Shown piece after piece: positions 18,001 through 42,000 of a stretch of 64,000 nucleotides of DNA (positions are counted from its first letter, which is position 1; each line of letters starts with the position of its first letter). Source of the stretch: Heteronotia binoei (lineage: Eukaryota); the NCBI RefSeq assembly GCF_032191835.1, contig NC_083236.1, positions 53,196,001-53,260,000 on the forward strand. The letters are read 5' to 3'. The notes under the pieces were generated by a model. It saw only the letters and a program-made list of their open reading frames with translations, had not been told where the DNA came from and searched no databases. The position numbers were made by a program, and so were the translations under genes.

Positions 18001-21000
18001 AAATGCCCTGCTGGACCGATGCACTGGGCAGTCATATGCAGCATCCTGGTTCCCACAGTGAACAACCAGATGCTTCCATAAGCAAGGCCAGAAGACAATA
18101 GCAACCCCCTCCCCCAGCTGCCAATATCTAAAGATGAAAGTTCCATTTAGCTATTGTAGCTAGCAGCTGTCGGCAGATCCTTTCGTTCATGAATCGTCTG
18201 GTTCCTTTTCAAGTCATCGAAGCTAGGGGCAGCGAAGTCTGTAAATTAATAATGCCTCGTGCAAAGAAGCCGTTTTCATTGGTCACTTAATCTGCAGCCA
18301 GTCACCCAGTTCTGACATTCAGAAAGAGAGAAAAGATGCTCTTTATCCCAGATCTCCATGCCATTCATCATTTTATAACTCTCCCCCCTTTTATCTGTCC
18401 TTCATGTGACTTGGTATTGAGTGCCAGCATTGAAAGTAGATGGCAGAACTGGCTCAGATTAAGCCCCGAGAGCATCCGTGTAGGATACGGCATTATGAGA
18501 CTGAGTGCCAGTTGAGAGAAAGAGAGAGCAAATAACTATCGGAGAGTGACACAGCAATAATAGGATATTAATGCTGTTTGAGGTGGTATTAGGCAGACGT
18601 CACAATTAAAAGAAAAATCCCCATGATTTCTGGAGAGCACAGACATTGTGAATTTGATGAGATCTATTCTTTTTTTCCTGGAAACTTTCCTCCCATTAAA
18701 TCTTATTCTGCTAAGCTTTTAAAAGTGGTAATCTTCCCTTCCCGCCTATGTTTTGCCGCATGTCTTCTGTATCATTGCCTTGCCCTTGTATCTTTAGAAG
18801 CTTACCCAGAGGTGGTAAAATAGAGAACCCTGTACATGTGTGTTCCTAGTCCAGGCATCATATTCTGTGACGCAACTCCTTCTCTCACCCGCAGCTATTC
18901 AAGAAAAGGACTCTGGCAGTCTTCTGTAGGATAGAATGCAGTAAATATGCCATCAGGAATCCAGCCGGTGGGCCTGACCTGGACAACCCAGGCTAGTCCA
19001 ATCTTGTAAGATCTCGGAAGCTAAGCAGGGTTGGCCCTGGCTAGTATTTGGATGGAAGTCTTCCAAGGGAGCCCAGGGTAGTGATGCAGAGGCAGGCAAT
19101 GACAAGCCATCTCTGAACATCCCTTGCCTTGAAAACCCTACAGGGTCGCTGTAAGTCAGCTGTGACTTGATGGCAAACCCCCCCCCCCCCCAAACACTGA
19201 GGCTCTGCTTAACTGTCATGATCTAGCCACAAGTTTATCCAAAAAAGTAAAAACAGGTTGCTTACCTGTAACTGATGATCTTCGAGTGGTCATCTGTGCA
19301 TTCACACCCATGGGAGAGAGCGCGCCTGTGCTGATCCGATCGGTACTTAACAAGCCAAAGGATTTTCGCGCTCAGCTCCAGTGGGCATGCGCAAGAACCC
19401 CACCACGCATGCTCACAGAGTGGGCGCGGACATCCCATCAGTTCCTTCTGACCGCTGTATGATCCTAAAGAGTGCTGAAGGACCGACAGCAGTGGGGAAG
19501 GAGGGTGGGTGGTGTGAATGCACAGATGACCACTCGAAGATCATCAGTTACAGGTAAGCAACCTGTTTATCTTCTTCGTGGTCTCTGTGCATCACACCCA
19601 TGGGAGATTAGCAAGCTAGGCCTATGTCTGGAGGAGGGTGCTGGAGGTCATTCAGACACAGCAGACAGCAGAAGCACATTGCACACTAGGAAAAACACAA
19701 GTGTAGATAGACAGTAGAGGCATAGCAGCTTGCTGACCGGCCTAGATCGTAGCTCTGTAGATCTGCTGTATAGACTTCTGTGGTAGTTGGCATGGTCGGG
19801 AGGTTATAAGTGACTTGATACAGCCTGTCCTTGCCTCCCGTTCCCGGTATTCCAAGGAGGTCTCCCATCTAAGCACTTGACAGGGTTGGCCCTGCTTAGC
19901 TTCTGAGATCCGATGAAATCAGGTTCGCCTGGGCTATCCAGGTCAGGGCTGGTAAGCTCTTGACACGGGATCATTCATGTGCATCTTCCAGAATCAGACA
20001 CTGGTTTGTAATGATCCAAAAGGAAGGACAGGGAGTTGGAGAGATGTCCCGAAAAGCAGAAAGAGCTCCCATTATGCACCAATCCCATGGTTCGGGCAGT
20101 AGGGAGAAGTGGAGCAACAGGGGGTCTCTGAAGAGTCAGAGAGATCTGAGGCACCAGAACTCCAGAAATGTAGGACATGCATGAGGAGGCTGGTAAGCAC
20201 CCGGACCGAGGTGGTTGAAGCCATAAGGCCCAGCGAGGATAGACATGGAAAACTGTGTGTTCTTACCATGTTCGGAGCACATGTTCAAAAGAGAAAGTTC
20301 TGCACTCCCCATATGATGTGTGTACGTGTGTGGACCCCACAGGCTAGCATTCATAGTTGTCCCTGTGGACTGGGCTATGTNNNNNNNNNNNNNNNNNNNN
20401 NNNNNNNNNNNNNNNNNNNNNNNNNNNNNNNNNNNNNNNNNNNNNNNNNNNNNNNNNNNNNNNNNNNNNNNNNNNNNNNNNNNNNNNNNNNNNNNNNNNN
20501 NNNNNNNNNNNNNNNNNNNNNNNNNNNNNNNNNNNNNNNNNNNNNNNNNNNNNNNNNNNNNNNNNNNNNNACAGTTACAGGAGTGTGGTTAAACCTAGGA
20601 AGCAGAGCAGGCTGAGAGTTATAGTTTGAGAGGGAGGCATGATGAATTCAAATGCCCAATGGAAGTGAAGTGGTCCAACTGAAATGTAGTGGGAATACAC
20701 ACTCAGTAAATTAGGGGTGCCAATCCCTACTTCACGTTAGTTGGCAGGAGCATATCATGCAGGGCAGTCCTGCTAAAATTACTAGAGGGACTAGTACTAC
20801 TGTCAATTGGAGAGCCAGTTTGGTGTAGTGGTTAAGTGCACAGACTCTTATCTGGGGGAACCAGGTTTGATTCCCCACTCCTCCACTTGCACCTGCTAAC
20901 ATGGCCCCGGGTCAGCCATAGCTTTGGCAGAGGTCGTCCTTGAAAGGGCCAGCTGCTGTGACCCTTTCAAGCCCCACCCACCTCACAGGGTGTCTGTTGT

Positions 21001-24000
21001 GGGGGAGGAAGATAAAAGGAGATTGTGAGCTGCTCTGAGACTCATCGGAGTGGAGGGCTATAAATCCAATATCATCTTCTTCATCTAGTGCTCTGTGGAT
21101 CCTGATGAGGCAGAGGCCTCCCAGTCCTGTTCTTGATACCATGAAGTGGCTATTTCAAAGGGAAGTAAATAAAAGTACCACCCGGAGCGAGGAGATCAAC
21201 TGATCAGCGCGGCGGTCAGAAAAGAACTGATGGGATGTCCGCGCCCACTCTGTGAGCATGCGTGGTGGGGTTCTTGCGCATGCCCACTGGAGCTGAGCGC
21301 GAAAATCCTTTGGCTTGTTAAGTACCGATCGGATCAGCACAGGCGCGCTCTCTCCCATGGGTGTGATGCACAGAGACCACGAAGAAGATTCTCTGTCTAG
21401 TGGAAGGGTTCCCGTTTGCCCATTCATGGCAAGAGTCCTCTAGGAAATTGCAACATTTCATCATTTGGTGGGCAGAAACTGGGTCTGGGAGGGCATGATA
21501 ATTCTGGGGAAGAAAATTAAGAAGAAAAATAAGGCCTTGGCTGCTTACAGGAAGTGCTGGCCATAGAGTTCCTGGCATTTCCCGGAGCTACACGGGAATG
21601 ACAAGGGTAGTTCTGTTACTTGCCAGGAACTCTGTGGCCAGAACTTCCTGGAAGTACCCATGGCTTTACTTTTCTTCTTTATTTCTGCCCCCCGCGATGC
21701 TCCCCCCCCCCCCGATGCTGCCCCCCTCTACAACCCTTTTGCCGGTGCAAGGCAGTGCCTGGCAATCCTGGCTAGTGGCCATCATCAGCTCTCATGCCAG
21801 TGTGAATTCCATATTAACTATGAGATGTGTGAAGACATTCTTTCAAGTGCAATTAATTCTGCCCAAACCACTTAGTTTTTTCTTTTTATTTCAGTTTCTC
21901 AAACTCCAGCTGAGATTCTTTTCTCTACCCTGCACTCCCGAATTACATTTGCAGTATAAGGAAGGATTATAGTTCTGTCCTGTCTTAAAATAAGAATCCA
22001 ACAATGTGCACCCCAAGCACTCCCCCTCTCCCCCCCAGGCACGCCGAACCAGCTCTCAAGCGTAACAGGACTATGTTGTACAGCACAAATATGGAAAATA
22101 AGTCTTCCTTTTCGTTCCCCACTCATCACTGTCATGTGCTATGTCTAGGTTGGTGCTACGCTGCAGTGCGGCATACAATCAGAAATTCTCAGCCTCTTTA
22201 GCCCCCCATATTACCACTTTGGTAGTACATGGAAAGCAGGTAAAGTGCACCCGGAGGCCTGAAACCATGCTGCTTGAGACTTGTCAGCTTCTTTGCATTT
22301 TGATGGTTGTTGCTTGATGTTGTTTTCCCGAAACGCTTTGCTCTGGATTTTTAAGGAGTGCACACCCGTGGGTCACAGACATCAGCATCAATTTGACTGA
22401 TGGATTTTTGCGCTAACGTCATTGGATATTCCCCCACTCATTTATTAACTCTTGATAAAGTAATGTTTTGGCTTCACAGCCTGTCTCAGAAAATGTGAAA
22501 TATCCCATTTTGCTATATTTCTGTGGTTTGACAATTGAGACAAATAAGATGCTGGAAATTCTAGGTTTTTATAGCAACTAGCAAGCGGAAGGCATAGATC
22601 AGATTGTGGTGGTAGTGCCGTGAGGGGGTGGTTTAACTTTTCCCCATGTCTGTATATTTTCCTGAATTTGTTTATTTATTCAAATATTTGTACCCAGTCT
22701 CTGTTCTAACTTGGATATCCCAGATCTCAGAAATCAGCCCTGGTTAGTACTTGGTTGGGAGACCACCAAGAAAGTTTGTACTTTGGAGAGACAGGAAGTG
22801 GCAAACCACCTCTGAACATCTGTTGACTTGAAAATGCTATGGGGTTGGCTGCAACTGGATGGCAAAGTGAAAACAACAAAGCGTCTCTCCCCCCCCCCCC
22901 CCCAGTCTGTGTAGCTCATGTCAGTTTAAAAATCCAAATCTATAACATACAAAATACAGCAAAACCCCAAGTAATCCACCTTCCCACCAAATGCCTGCAG
23001 CCTACACTTCATCCCAGTGAATTTAATTTAATTAATTTGATTTAATTTTAGATTTATATCCTGTCCTGTCTCGCAAGCAGGCTCAGGGCGGCTTACAACA
23101 CTAAAACAACAGAGTTAAAATAATATCATCAAAACAGACATTACAAAACAGGAGCAGCACAGTAAACAATCTTACAGACCTAGGCGGTAAATAGCATGCG
23201 GCTGATGGCTAACAGCACAACATAACACCATAATGGTGAAATGCTGGGGGAAGTGATGACTTTCAAGGTTGAATAACATGGCTTTGCAGGATCTCCCAAA
23301 AACATGTTGAGTATCCTTGTAACCACCCCTGGGAGCCCACTCCATAGGGTGGGAGTTATCATGAGAAGAGCACAGGCTCAGGTGAGTGCCAGGTGGGCTA
23401 ACTTAAGTAGGGGAACAACATGAGGACAGTAGGTGGCACACAAAGATATATGGAAGGAGACAGTCCTTTAGATATGTGGCTCCAAGGCAGGCCGATAGCC
23501 ACTGGGGGGCACGGCCCCTCCACCCAACCCTCCCTTGGACCTTTGTGACCCCTCCTTTTCCCGGACTCCACTCTCTCCACCGCCGCTTTTGTCCCCGTGG
23601 CTCTGGCGGCCCCACCCCCCTCTGTGCGAAACTTCCCCCTCCCTCCCTCCCTCCTACCCACCCACTTACCCATTAACCAGGCGGAAGAGTAAAGAGCAGG
23701 CTCCTGGGGCTCTTGCAAGGCGCCCCCCCCCAGCCAATCACATGATCAGTAGAAAAAGTTTCTCTGAAGCCAGCTTTCCAGAGCAATCAGCAAGTTCAGC
23801 GCTGGGGTGACAAGCGCTAAACTTGCTGATCGCTCTGGAAAGCCAGCTTCAGAGAGGCTTTTTCTGCTGATCATGTGATCGGTGGGGGGGCGCCTTGCAA
23901 GAGCCCCATGAGCCCGCTCTTTACTCTTTTGCCCGGTTGATTGGTGAGTAAGTGGGTGGGTGGGAGGGGGGAGGGAGGGAGAGGTGCTGTGTGGAGGGGG

Positions 24001-27000: not shown

Positions 27001-30000
27001 GATTCAGTAGAACATAAGCTAAATTCCTCACTGTATGACGAAATTTCTAAGATAACCAAAATGGTGCCTGACAGGTTGAGGGAATGTCATGAGAACTGAG
27101 GGAGATTTAGTGCACATGCACAGCTTTCAAGCTGAGGGGTGGAGTGGCCAAGAAGGTGTATTCTACATCTTGGCCTAACAGTAAGGCATGAAAGCTAGAA
27201 AGTAAAAAACAAAGCTGTGTAGCTGAGGGTGATAAAAATACATTAGAATGGCTCTGGTATATATGTGCTGATTAGTCACGGGCATGACCCGAACTATGAA
27301 TTGCAATTCATGCACAAATCGAGCCAATGTGTGAATCATTTTTAACTGCTTCTGACCATGGTGCTTCGTTTGTTTAGTCTTTGCAGTTTGTTTTCCCAGA
27401 CAGCCTGGTGCTGATTCAATCAGTTGCTAGGCAACACTGGGGGGTGGACTTCCGGGAGCCCTAGAAATACCCATAGCAGTTGTCCATACCTTCATTGGCA
27501 GTTCTGGGAGCCAGTCATGGAGCTCGCATTCTGCAGCATGAAGAGAGAAGAGTTAGTTGTGAGACCTGAAGCTGAGCTTTCCTGGGGGCACCTGCTTTGC
27601 GGGGAGGGGGCGGGGCTATAACTTGGACATGCCAAATCCAGTCTTTGCCAGACTTCGATGGCAGGTGGAAGAGAGCCTGCTGATGATAATTTCCAGTGAA
27701 TTTTACACCTAACAAACCCTGAACCAGGTCAGAAATCCAATGACTCATGAAACGAACCACCATCTCCCCCAGTTTGTGCCCATCCTTAGTGCTGACTCAC
27801 AGCATACTGATTAGTAAGCTGGTTTTGCTCTCTCACTGCAGTTTATGCCCTCCATTCCCCAAAGGAGATTTATTTGTTCACTTAAAAAAAATATTTTCCC
27901 CAGCTTTAGTCCAAGGAGTTTAGGGTAGATGGCATTGCATGATTTTCTCCCCTGCCCCCCCACCCCATGTCCTCACATCAACACTGTGAAGTAGATAGGC
28001 AGAAAGACTGATAACTATCCCAGAGTCACCCTGTGAGTTGAGTTGGGGATCACAGGCTTAGACGGTGATTGCTGTGAACCTCCAATTCCTTGGCCATGAT
28101 AAAACGATTTGTTCATTTAATGCGATTTTGCTTCCGTGTCTGGAAAGGCGTGGCAACTCATGAGCCAACGTGATGTCTGCACCAGCAGATAGTATATCCC
28201 AGATAACATTTTGCAAGGATGGGTAGAACTGGCTGTGGGAAAGTTGTTATCTGTAGAGTTAATAGTAAGAGCCAGGGGTAGAATTGTAGCAGGAGCTCCT
28301 TTGCATATTAGGCCACACACCCCTGATGTAGCCAATCCTCCAAGAGCTTACAAAAAAGAGCCTTGTAAGCTCTTGGAGGATTGGCTGCATCGGGTGTGTG
28401 GCCTAATATGCAAAGGAGCTCCTGCTAGAATTCCACCCCTGGTAAGAACTGTAGTCTTAAAAGGGTCCAAAAGTATAAAGGAGATATATTTGAGGAGGAA
28501 AAAACCCACAGATTTTTTTTTCCTTTGTGTTGTGGGGGGAAATAAAAATGTATCCATATATTTGTTTTTCACTAGATGTGAGTGTTTTATTTGAAGCCAG
28601 GAGGACTGGCTTCAAATCAGATCTGCTGGGTAGCTTTGGGCAAGCTCATAGCTTCCCTGCTATTCTTTCATCTGTGAAATGGAAGCAATATGGCTTGTCT
28701 CGCATAGTGGTTGTAAAACTGAGTGAACGTACAGCATTTTCTGCCTAACAGTGGCAATGGGCACTGTCTTTTAATTTTTGTATAGTTATAGTGCCTTCAG
28801 TGTGTCAGATGCTTTATAGAGCAGCATAATGAAAAGAAGTTTACTGTTAAAATCTGAATACATCCAGGGCAGGTTAAAAGCCTTAACAAAGTGGCAGATG
28901 CAAAGATAAAATGANNNNNNNNNNNNNNNNNNNNNNNNNNNNNNNNNNNNNNNNNNNNNNNNNNNNNNNNNNNNNNNNNNNNNNNNNNNNNNNNNNNNNN
29001 NNNNNNNNNNNNNNNNNNNNNNNNNNNNNNNNNNNNNNNNNNNNNACACTCTAAAGTGAATTTTGAAGTTCTCTCTTCCAAGATCAGGTAGCTAATGTTT
29101 CAGAATTCCAAACAGAACCATTTTCTGCCAGAGTTAAAAAATAATACTGCTGTATGATCCCCAAAGTAAATATTGGCCATCTAAAACAGAAACTTTCCAG
29201 AGTATGTAGTTTTGACTGCAACCTAAATTTTCATCTAAAAGGTTCTTGCAAGATTTACAATGGCTTTTTCTGTCCCGGACAATAAGGATATATGAGTAGA
29301 ACTGAAAATGTTGTTCTGGAGCAAAACAACAGTGTAAGCCAGTAACTCATACCACATGCACTTAGGACCCATAGAAATGACTAACCTTGGAGGTTCTTGT
29401 GTGTTCTGAAAAATACTTCCTTGACCCTCAAGCAAGCCATGCCATAATTGTTTTATTTGCTGCTTGAAATTTCATTAACATAGTCATAGTACATAGCTGC
29501 CCTTCTCTGGGTAGCCCAAGCTAACCTGCTCCTGTCAGATCTTGGAAGCTAAGCAGGGGGTCAGCCTTGGCTAGTATTTGGATGGAAGACCTTCAAGGAA
29601 TCCCAAGGTTGTGATGTGGGGGCAGGCAATGGCAAACCACCTCTAAACATAGAGAAAAGAAGAGGAAGAGAAGAAGGTGGATTGGATTGTGATCCACCCT
29701 GAACCCTTCCCTGGAAAAGGGCGGACTATAAATTGCCTAAAATAAATTAAATAAATTTATACCCTGCCCCTCACTAAGAGTCTCAAAGCAACTTACAATC
29801 TCCTTTCCCTTCCCCTCACCACAACAGACACCCTGTGAGGTAGGTGGAGCTGAAAGAACTGCTTTTAGGAGAACAGCTCTGAATGAACTTGTAACTGACT
29901 CAAGATCACACCAGAAGGTGCATGTGGGGGGGGGGGGAGAAAGGGGGGGATCAAACCCGGTTCTCCCAGATTAGAGTCCGTGCTCCTAACCACTACACTA

Positions 30001-39000: not shown

Positions 39001-42000
39001 TTGAACAATGAAGGATATCTTTGAAATGTTTGTCTTTAAAAAGTATTTCTCTCATTCCAAAAGAGAAAATATTCCTTGGGACAGGAACTCATTAGTATGT
39101 GAGGCCACACCTCTGACATAACCATCATTTGTATACTAGGCCACACCTCTGACTCACCATCATTTGCATATTAGGCTGCACCTCTGACATCACCACCATT
39201 TGCATGCTAGGCCACACCAATGACATCACCACCATTTGCATACTAGGCCTCACCTCTGACATCACCAAAAGTGCTATAATATCTTTTTTGAGCTGGTCAC
39301 CACACCTCAAAAAAGATATTCTAGCATTGGAAAAAGTTCACAAATATATAGCCATTCCAGAAAAAATAAATCAAATTCCAACACGCTACTCGATCACAAG
39401 AGCCAGCATGGTATAGTGCAGAAAGAAAGAAAGAGAGAAAGAAAGAGAGAAAGAGAGAGAAAGGGAGGGAGGAGGGGGACAGTGGGGCAGTAGGAAGGCA
39501 AACGGAAAAAATAAATATTGACAGAAAGACTGACAGAAAGAAAGAGTTGGGGAGTGGAAAATAAAGCAAATAGACAAGAGAAAAAGAAAGACTGCAGAAA
39601 GAAAAAATGAATGAATAAAAGGGAGAGAGAGTTAGAAAAGAAGGAAGGAAAAGGGAGGGGAGGAGGGGAAGAAAGGAAAAAAAGAAAGGAAAAGAACAAA
39701 AGAAATGGAAAGGGGATGGGAGCAACTCACCTTAAAAACTGCTGACTCTGTGCTGCATGGTTGGTTTTGTAGAGCTCCGCTGGCCGGCACAACAATGGGA
39801 AGCCCCTGTGCAAGCACGGTTGGGCCCCCTGAGCTTCACCGGCCGGCGCAACGATAGGAAGCCCCCACGCAAGTGTGGTTGGACCCCCTGAGCTCTGCAA
39901 GCCGGCATGACAACGGGAAGCCCCGGCGAAAGCGCGATTGGGCCCCTGAGCTCCGCAGGCTGGTGCGACAACAGGAAGCCCCTGTGGAAGCACGGTTGGG
40001 CCCCCTGAGTGCCACCGGCTGGCACAACGATGAGAAGCCCCCACACAAGTGGGGTTGGGCCCCCTGAGCTCTGCAGGCCGGTGTGACGATGGAAGCCCCC
40101 GTGCAAGCGCGGTTGGGCCCCCCGAGCTCTGCTGGCCGGCGCGACAATGGGAAGCCCCTGTGCAAGCGCGGTTGGGCTCCCTGAGCCCCACAGCTAATGG
40201 GATGTTGGGAGGCCTCTGCACAAGTGTGGCTTAGCCCCCTGAGCCCAGTGGCCAGCTGGGAAGCCGCCTGGGGTGAACCGGAACGCTGATGTAGGTAGCC
40301 GGAATGCTGCCCCTGCCAGCCGGAATGCTGTTCCGGTGCATTCCGGCTCAAAAAAAGCCCTGTTTGGGACTCTTCTTAAGGGCTCCTCAATAGTTCCAAT
40401 TTTTCCATTGGAAAGATAGGAAGGAGTCAGCCAGTGAGGGGGGTCGGGGATAGTCTCCCCCACTTTTTTGAATTATTTTTCTAGGCCTTCACACCTCTAT
40501 TAAAATATAATTCTCAGAGGCCAGGAAGCCCGTTTAACTTGCATATTTTTGTAAGTACATATTTTGGGGAAATTGAATTAATCTCCTTACTTTTCTGTAA
40601 TGCTTCTCTCATTTATTAGTTCTCTTTCTCTGCTTTCCCAGTCTCCGCGTGAACCAGTTCCCTTCCTTGTCCCAAGGTTAATGCCGTACTCTCAATTTCC
40701 TTTATTTCGCTCTTCTCACCCACCCCAGTGAACAAAATTAACCTTCTCCCAGAAATAGTATTCTGGTCCCAGTAATGATTAGATTGGGTGTCTCATTATC
40801 GATTTGTGTGCTGGGTTTCCTGCTGAAATAGATACAGATCTTGACAGCCCCATTACTGTAAAGACTTCCAATCCAATACAGCCTATTCAACCTCCGTCCG
40901 TCAGAGTTTGGCAGGCTGTGCCTCTAAAGAGTTGCCTCCTTAAACTCAACTCGCTCTTTTTCCCTCTCCCTTCTTTTATACCAAGAGAATGACTCACATA
41001 AGCAATTACAGACGGAGAAGACTTTGTCCGTGAACGTCTCTCTCTTGGTTTCCAGGCTGCATCATTGTGTAGCCTCTAGGCTGTTTTCCAAACGATGTGT
41101 TCTGCATTGTTGTATCAGCATCGATGGGGAGAGAAGTACTGTAATTGAGTCTGAGAACCGATGTCTCCTTCCTACCCTTTTCTTCATGGAGTGTTGTAAG
41201 CTCCATTCAGAGCTGTCGCAGCAGCACTTTCGTTTTGCCTTTGGCATGAGACGAACGTTCTCTAGCTGAACCTGCTTTATCGTCCCTTGCCTGATGGTAC
41301 CTTTGACCATGGGTGGTCAAACTTGCTTAACATAAGAGCCGCATAGAATAAACATCGGATGTTTGAGAGCCACAAGACATGAATGCCGGATGTTTTGAGC
41401 GCAGGAAGGATGAAAGGGGTGGGAAGAAAGCAATTTTAACTTTAAATGTGTTCTGAAGCTGCTGGCTGACTTAGCTCGGGAAAGTGATATAAAGAGAGAA
41501 ATGCAAACCGACTGACAGGGTGATGGGAGCTTCGAGAGCCATACAATATGTGTGAAAGAGCCACATGCGACTCCCAAGCCACACTTTGGCCACCCCCTAC
41601 CTTTGACCATGTGCGGCGCTTCTATCCAGGAGTAGCCCACAAATCTACTATCCGGAGATCACACATGCCCAGCTTCAGCCATATTTGGCACCCACAGAAA
41701 ACAACCACGAGTCTTGTAACATCTTCATGTGTTTGTTTTGGCATAAGGTTGTGCAAACCCAGAGCCCACTTTGCCAGATGGATTCTGATTCACGAAAGTT
41801 TATGCTTCAGATGCATTCATCTGTCCTTAAGGAGCAGTGATCATTTGGCTGCAACAGACTGGCACAGCTACGCTACCCATCTGGAATTCAGTCGAAAACG
41901 GCCATTAGTTTAATTAAACCCATTGGGAGAGCACAGTTAAGTAGCTGGACTTTCTTAGAAACTTAAGGAAATAATCACCATACAAAACACATCAGTGCTG

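Follow-up and report, generated by a model that had tools for sequence, protein, structure and literature searches.

The locus described here raises the question whether a retrotransposon of the DIRS1 type that carries no genes of its own can have been mobile. It lies in a window of 64 kb, i.e. the whole stretch of contig NC_083236.1 of Heteronotia binoei that was analysed, and all positions refer to this window. The putative element is 2,139 bp long, 190 of which are N (Table 1). Its layout of inverted terminal repeats (ITRs) and an internal complementary region (ICR) is of the DIRS1 type, genes are absent from its visible sequence, and its repeats and its interior differ in age. We consider it reasonably probable, at roughly 60%, that 19251-21389 derives from a DIRS1-like tyrosine-recombinase retrotransposon of squamates, is itself non-autonomous and was copied in trans more recently than about 3-9 My ago.

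Table 1. Parts of the putative mini-DIRS1 element in window coordinates, with the observation on which each part is based
Feature	Position	Strand	Basis or remark
Putative mini-DIRS1 element	19251-21389	minus	Heteronotia binoei, NC_083236.1 stretch
Right extension (rE), 3' tip of the element	19251-19277	-	Alignment of the termini
Divergent part of the right ITR	19278-19301	-	Partly like the other terminus; exact match to its own ICR half
Conserved right ITR	19302-19447	-	No mismatch to the left ITR within 19302-19444
Spacer between ICR and right ITR, 63 nt	19448-19510	-	Sequence reading
Right ICR, 58 nt	19511-19568	-	Reverse-complementary to 19251-19308 (3' terminus) at all positions
Left ICR, 39 nt	19569-19607	-	Reverse-complementary to 21351-21389 (5' terminus) at all positions
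Interior, 3' side, non-coding	19608-20380	-	CpG obs/exp 0.31; 5S-type SINE head 19833-19947
Assembly gap, 190 N, length an estimate	20381-20570	.	Sequence reading
Interior, 5' side, non-coding	20571-21220	-	CpG obs/exp 0.23; tRNA-type SINE ~20802-21068 (+)
Conserved left ITR, presumed promoter side	21221-21366	-	Repeat search and position-by-position comparison
Left ITR, divergent part, forming the 5' tip	21367-21389	-	Exact match to the left ICR

The termini were examined for the features that distinguish DIRS1-like elements. A repeat search aligned the conserved ITR arms over 146 nt with 99% identity. The original prediction had described identical ITRs of 142 bp beginning at 19303; when compared position by position, the perfect run comprises 143 nt (19302-19444 and 21224-21366), and 10 CpGs are intact in each arm. 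A 30-nt probe from the ITR matched only the two ITR sites in the window, with 0 matches expected by chance. Outside of the conserved arms the ITRs diverge over about 24 nt by several mismatches and one indel, as they do in DIRS1-like elements. Moreover, only one of the two repeats had been claimed to carry an outer extension, which proved to be a segment of 27 nt found solely at this end and in the right ICR. This extension is complementary to the right ICR only and missing from the other terminus, which is again a property of DIRS1-like elements. It is able to form a hairpin with a 6-bp stem of ACAGGT and ACCTGT (fold -6.7 kcal/mol, z -2.4). A splice-donor-like CAG/GTAAGC was also seen in the extension.

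The predicted ICR of 97 nt (19511-19607) with complementarity to both outer ends was recovered without a single deviation, as 58/58 positions of its right half and 39/39 of its left half match. The halves meet at 19568/19569, with 63 nt separating the ICR from the right ITR, and each half pairs with its own terminus and not with the opposite one. Hence the DIRS1 architecture proposed for this locus, i.e. ITRs with a conserved inner and a divergent outer part together with ICR halves complementary to both ends, holds, and so does the minus-strand orientation, as the ICR adjoins the terminus bearing the extension and the left ICR precedes the right ICR. The set of cis modules is complete, comprising the left terminus, both ICR halves, the spacer, the right terminus and the right extension. 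No direct repeat was found in the flanks, which end with ...AAAAAAGTAA and begin with TCTCTGTCTA..., and the lack of a target-site duplication is in line with DIRS1-like elements. These are further characterized by a 3-bp circular junction, in which the ICR halves overlap and both ends share the same trinucleotide. Such a junction was not found here, which counts against the reading as a DIRS1 derivative; the halves abut without a 3-bp overlap, and the sense strand begins with ATC (flank AGA) and ends with TTT. The end trinucleotides are likewise unequal in AcDIRS1 (CTT/CAT) and AcDIRS2 (TTT/TGT), the DIRS1-like elements of Anolis carolinensis described by Piednoel et al. 2011 (PMC3266345), and therefore this junction is a weak criterion.

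The places of gag, reverse transcriptase (RT)/RNase H/methyltransferase and recombinase are occupied by non-coding, SINE-bearing DNA. In the visible interior of 1,423 bases, the 190-N gap being outside of this reading, no ORF on the sense strand exceeds 95 aa; the longest stop-to-stop piece of this length is located within 19608-20380 and has no Pfam match. None of the 20 translated pieces of the visible interior contains a Pfam domain, and a word-based protein search found no relatives of the ORF spanning the ITR or of the longest interior ORF. The gag, RT/RNase H/methyltransferase and tyrosine recombinase ORFs of an autonomous DIRS1-like element are thus absent from the visible sequence. This agrees with the predicted span of about 2.1 kb without an RT, RNase H or recombinase ORF and with the claimed absence of coding capacity. 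The suggestion of a recombinase-like C-terminal remnant had to be abandoned, since the corresponding 51-aa stop-to-stop peptide has no Pfam match and phmmer found no recombinase. Its sole match among 1.84 billion representative proteins was an immunoglobulin-repeat protein, hit by a repeated chance match of 21 residues. Nor does any ORF of at least 150 aa in the 64-kb window resemble a second DIRS element.

Part of the interior is hidden by the assembly gap, and the absence of genes could thus reflect an assembly problem, either because the gap conceals much more sequence or because the scaffold joins two different contigs bearing DIRS elements. The gap interrupts the element itself, its given length is an estimate, and gap sides that look compatible would be obtained from any pair of copies within a single young family; the two gap flanks do not overlap. 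A listed ORF of 168 aa across the gap (20109-20615) is not real, as it is made of X. We nevertheless regard this explanation as very improbable. The gaps of the window have the uneven sizes 190 and 131, which look like read-pair estimates instead of placeholders, and non-coding, SINE-bearing sequence is already present both beside the ICR (773 nt) and beside the left ITR (650 nt). In AcDIRS1 and AcDIRS2 the ITR is followed by gag, and the recombinase motif precedes the ICR by about 515 nt (PMC3266345). Since gag and recombinase are missing at these places, the gap alone cannot restore an autonomous copy, whatever it hides. The repeats themselves are no artefact either, because the halves of the bipartite ICR match two different termini, which an assembler could not have invented.

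The repeats and the interior contrast in age. The repeats show zero differences over 143 plus 97 paired bases, in agreement with the youth originally predicted for the insertion. As replication resets the ITR arms and the termini and zero differences remain, the last insertion should have occurred less than about 3-9 My ago, a bound derived from 243 compared positions. The interior contains, on the minus strand, a 5S-type SINE head scoring 46 bits against Rfam and, on the plus strand, a tRNA-type SINE which is 78-89% identical to other copies in the window. This SINE identity, set against the zero differences in the element's own repeats, bears out the claim that the SINEs are much older than the insertion. 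CpG obs/exp amounts to about 0.76 for 19251-19447 and about 0.83 for 21221-21389; the interior (0.23-0.31) and the flanks (0.30-0.34) are similarly depleted.

The interior hence resembles the surrounding genome, and other origins fit it too, which has to be counted against the reading as a non-autonomous derivative. The locus might never have been one mobile unit, if two separate DIRS fragments, one with the ICR and the right terminus and one with the left terminus alone, bracketed resident DNA or if an old rearranged copy had its repeats homogenized by gene conversion. An interior with the CpG depletion and the SINE load of the flanks would then be expected, and gene conversion is possible between close inverted repeats. 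However, two fragments would have to derive from the same young family, to end at exact true termini and to lie 1.6 kb apart in the correct relative orientation, and gene conversion would have had to act on three separate repeat pairs without leaving a mismatch, segments of 39 nt and 58 nt among them. In addition, neither DIRS module visibly interrupts a repeat. We therefore judge this origin to be very improbable.

The same interior is also compatible with a chimera that was dead on arrival. The RT of a full-length DIRS element would have switched to a host RNA of intronic or UTR origin carrying old SINEs and back again during one recent retrotransposition, giving a single defective copy which never spread. 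Ordinary genomic DNA is indistinguishable from the interior in CpG depletion and SINE content, and a single event predicts equally perfect identity of ITRs and ICR. Moreover, neither another copy nor a partner was found, which also counts against a non-autonomous derivative: probes for the ITR and the ICR yielded nothing relevant in metagenome, viral and prokaryote collections, but these are not expected to contain the genome of Heteronotia binoei and could not have shown further copies in it. The only metagenome match to the ICR junction (L001) was an unrelated protein-coding contig without any other likeness to the element, i.e. a chance match. Among sequencing runs the best one was an RNA metatranscriptome containing 0.36 of the sampled words, the part of the stretch being unspecified, with DNA runs reaching at most 0.12; these values bear on neither expression nor copy number. 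The chimera requires two precise template switches which spared every cis module, and we consider it unlikely, though it deserves more weight than the explanations discussed above.

For a non-autonomous derivative, movement can be described along the Cappello model, which has been partly tested in Dictyostelium. The CpG-rich left ITR would drive a transcript lacking both outer tips, and the reverse transcriptase of a full-length DIRS element would copy this transcript in trans. The opposite arm would serve to restore the conserved ITR and the ICR would be the template for the tips, which would make the ITR arms identical again and the termini fully complementary to the ICR. The ends would then join to a circle, which the recombinase of the partner would integrate without target-site duplication. 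The enzymes for these steps were probably borrowed from full-length relatives, and we infer mobilisation in trans as well as the existence of sister copies and of an autonomous partner. More tentatively, the element may belong to a family of protein-less DIRS1 hitch-hikers that is actively spreading and that would represent, among tyrosine-recombinase elements, the counterpart of LARD/TRIM elements or MITEs. Full-text literature searches did not turn up any account of a non-autonomous DIRS element of the ITR/ICR type in a vertebrate; Repbase, which was outside of this search, may catalogue such families.

The replication of DIRS elements is unusual and only partly tested. A young copy found in nature with no more than the cis signals suggests that every step of the DIRS cycle can be borrowed, and it delimits the sequences that are sufficient. 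If the hitch-hiker family exists, it would be natural proof that reverse transcription, end repair templated by the ICR, circle formation and integration by a recombinase all work in trans. The minimal cis set would then comprise about 180 nt of the left and about 200 nt of the right terminus together with the ICR of 97 nt and a spacer of about 60 nt, and foreign cargo of more than 1.4 kb would be tolerated. For genome annotation it is relevant that short ITR/ICR units are easily mistaken for foldback or MITE-like repeats.

The closest match in terminal organization is provided by AcDIRS1 and AcDIRS2 (PMC3266345). Their ICR halves measure 39-40 and 58-60 nt, the spacer about 60, the conserved ITR 136-140, the divergent ITR 26 and the right extension 26-28 nt. 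The corresponding values of the present element, which has no left extension, are 39 and 58, 63, about 146, about 24 and 27 nt, so that the terminal geometry is nearly equal in its dimensions; the absence of a target-site duplication is common to both. In contrast, AcDIRS1 and AcDIRS2 are 5,938-5,997 bp long and encode gag, RT/RNase H/methyltransferase (MT) and recombinase, whereas the copy described here is geneless and only 2,139 bp long. The same logic is known from the LARD and TRIM derivatives of LTR retrotransposons and from the SIDEs of LINEs, which keep their cis-acting ends around a non-coding or foreign interior and are copied in trans by a partner. They differ in their cis signals, i.e. 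LTR, PBS and PPT or the LINE 3' end, and in the enzymes used for integration. Within the DIRS order, the repeats of TOC1 are direct and split, as in the PAT type, in place of ITRs with an ICR. TOC1 of Chlamydomonas is a mobile, non-autonomous element without coding capacity (PMC9940879); its host is a green alga, whereas the present element resides in a vertebrate. DIRS-1 of Dictyostelium discoideum, which was studied together with the truncated construct trDIRS-1 by Malicki et al. 2020 (PMC7192593), shares the ITRs and an ICR that pairs with both tips (33 + 55 nt, against 39 + 58 nt here) as well as a small hairpin near the 3' end. In DIRS-1 the ICR is essential and RT acts in trans on a gene-deleted element (PMC7192593). 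Retrotransposition of trDIRS-1 was not completed in the assay and the full trans cycle of a truncated DIRS element has not been shown experimentally (PMC7192593). Unlike trDIRS-1, the natural geneless copy described here appears to have finished retrotransposition.

The repeat search and a position-by-position check revealed three sets of exact inverse matches within 19251-21389. They are listed below with the lengths published for AcDIRS1 and AcDIRS2, two DIRS1-like elements of Anolis carolinensis (PMC3266345). The core of the inverted terminal repeats (ITRs) pairs perfectly and retains 10 CpGs, the original prediction having claimed identical repeats with all CpGs intact, and pairing reaches 146 nt at 99%. 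Local BLAST in the window extended this pairing with a few differences. A 30-nt ITR probe found two sites only in the 64-kb window, both of them the ITRs, where none was expected by chance. Alignment of the termini resolved three zones, namely an extension at one end (right extension, rE), a divergent zone of about 24 nt with several mismatches and one indel, and the identical core. The two halves of the internal complementary region (ICR), likewise predicted to be complementary to the outer ends, each match their own terminus through the divergent zone and not the opposite one. This identifies a DIRS1-type element, and an assembler artefact could not yield such a pattern.

Features of the element and its surroundings (window coordinates), with lengths in the Anolis elements
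Feature	Position	This copy	AcDIRS1	AcDIRS2	Remark
Left divergent ITR		~23 nt	26	26	sense strand
Conserved ITR		~146 nt	140	136
ITR core	19302-19444, 21224-21366	143 nt			perfect pairing
Extended ITR pairing	~19279-19455, 21212-21385				few differences
Left ICR	19569-19607	39 nt	40	39	exact reverse complement of 21351-21389
Right ICR	19511-19568	58 nt	58	60	exact reverse complement of 19251-19308
Spacer, ICR to right ITR		63 nt	~60	~60
Right divergent ITR		~24 nt	26-27	26-27
rE	19251-19277	27 nt	26	28	one end only
Total length	19251-21389	2,139 bp incl. 190 N	5,938 bp	5,997 bp
GCATGCG motif pair	19386-19412, mirror in 21256-21282				~14 nt apart
Gap in element	20381-20570	190 N
Second window gap	28915-29045	131 N
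5S-type SINE	18971-19250				Rfam 24 bits, below threshold
Hairpin-like repeat	21514-21684				78-nt arms, 15-nt loop
Tandem array	39772-40191				~59-nt units, at least 6 copies, 68-90% identity

By definition, the ICRs of DIRS1 elements lie close to the 3' end, the left ICR being complementary to the start of the left terminus and the right ICR to where the right terminus ends, rE included (PMC3266345). All three features agree here and place the element on the minus strand, the orientation originally proposed. No target-site duplication was read at its flanks. Nor was the 3-bp junction overlap seen that has been described for many DIRS (PMC3266345), as the ICR halves adjoin without overlap and the element, on its sense strand, begins with ATC and ends with TTT; the end trinucleotides are also unequal in both Anolis elements (PMC3266345). 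The rE folds into a hairpin with a 6-bp stem and, by reading of this copy, carries the donor-like string CAG|GTAAGC. In the conserved ITR, two inverted GCATGCG motifs stand in CpG-rich surroundings, and judging by their sequence they may represent a family promoter element. Immediately to the right of the element lies a hairpin-like inverted repeat with 81% complementary arms. Rfam returned mir-3199-like matches for both of its strands, but these were weak (42 and 32 bits, the gathering score being 100), and it is probably a palindromic MITE-type repeat.

The predicted absence of coding capacity was borne out in the visible sequence. The 1,423 bases of interior contained no sense-strand stop-to-stop piece above 95 aa, none of 20 pieces from both strands belonged to a Pfam family, and the longest interior ORF had no word-sharing relative in the protein search. 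The longest ORF of the region (168 aa, + strand, 20109-20615) was rejected, since it exists only where the N gap is translated as X; the 90 aa of actual sequence in it (20109-20378) matched no Pfam family above threshold, and relatives were not found. A recombinase-like remnant had also been proposed, and this claim was abandoned. The 51-aa piece had no Pfam match, and a full HMMER pass (phmmer) over 1.84 billion representative proteins returned no recombinase and one match only, an immunoglobulin-repeat protein hit through a chance match of 21 residues that recurs eight times.

The gap might conceal a longer or mis-joined element, which we consider very unlikely. Its flanks do not overlap, and the differing lengths of the two window gaps suggest that they were estimated from read pairs and are not placeholders. 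In the two Anolis elements the recombinase motif precedes the left ICR by about 515 nt, and gag comes after the left ITR (PMC3266345). In this copy, non-coding sequence with one SINE occupies both the 773 nt preceding the ICR and the 650 nt following the left ITR, which argues against a hidden element; on this layout, filling the gap could not restore autonomy in any case. A mis-join is opposed by the ICR halves matching different termini.

CpG observed/expected was 0.76-0.83 in the termini and 0.23-0.31 in the interior, compared with 0.30-0.34 in the flanks and 0.29 in the window. In the Cappello model the right repeat serves to restore the left one and the ICR is the template on which the tips are restored (PMC7192593), so that every retrotransposition resets the ITR and ICR matches. 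Zero differences at 243 compared positions put the insertion age at no more than about 3-9 My, at assumed rates of 0.7-2 x 10^-9 per site per year. The least probable reading is that of two separate fragments around resident DNA, or of repeats held identical by gene conversion. The inner tRNA-type SINE shows 78-89% identity to other window copies, about the distance of those copies among themselves, and the inner 5S-type SINE head scored 46 bits in Rfam. By their divergence the SINEs are much older than the bound, in line with the older SINEs predicted in a young element, and were thus already in the template when this copy arose. A second 5S-type SINE abuts the element at its 3' end, with its A-rich tail right at the insertion point.

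With this architecture and age contrast and no genes in the visible sequence, the element is most likely a gene-less DIRS1 derivative copied in trans. The CpG-rich left ITR would drive transcription, and the reverse transcriptase of a full-length partner would copy the transcript in trans. The ends would be repaired on the copy's own ICR and joined into a circle, which the partner's tyrosine recombinase would integrate. We infer mobilisation as a unit, sister copies and a partner; a one-off chimeric cDNA from template switching is an unlikely alternative origin. For DIRS-1, the ICR was essential and the reverse transcriptase acted in trans on a truncated element, the full cycle in trans not being demonstrated in that study (PMC7192593).

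When sequencing runs were ranked by word sharing, an RNA metatranscriptome shared 0.36 of sampled words and DNA runs at most 0.12, figures that give no firm indication of expression or copy number. The 21-nt ICR junction string matched one metagenome contig (Ga0247727_10216407, 869-889); this was dismissed as chance, the contig being protein-coding and unrelated to the element. The ORF around the match looks by eye like a bacterial transposase. ITR probes found nothing in viral and prokaryote collections; neither these nor the metagenomes are expected to include a squamate genome. The literature search, with Repbase, where entries may exist, outside its scope, turned up no vertebrate DIRS of the ITR/ICR type described as non-autonomous. 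Anolis is rich in DIRS1-like elements, with 775 sequences in 42 families (PMC3266345), and TOC1 of Chlamydomonas is a known non-autonomous element of the DIRS order (PMC9940879).
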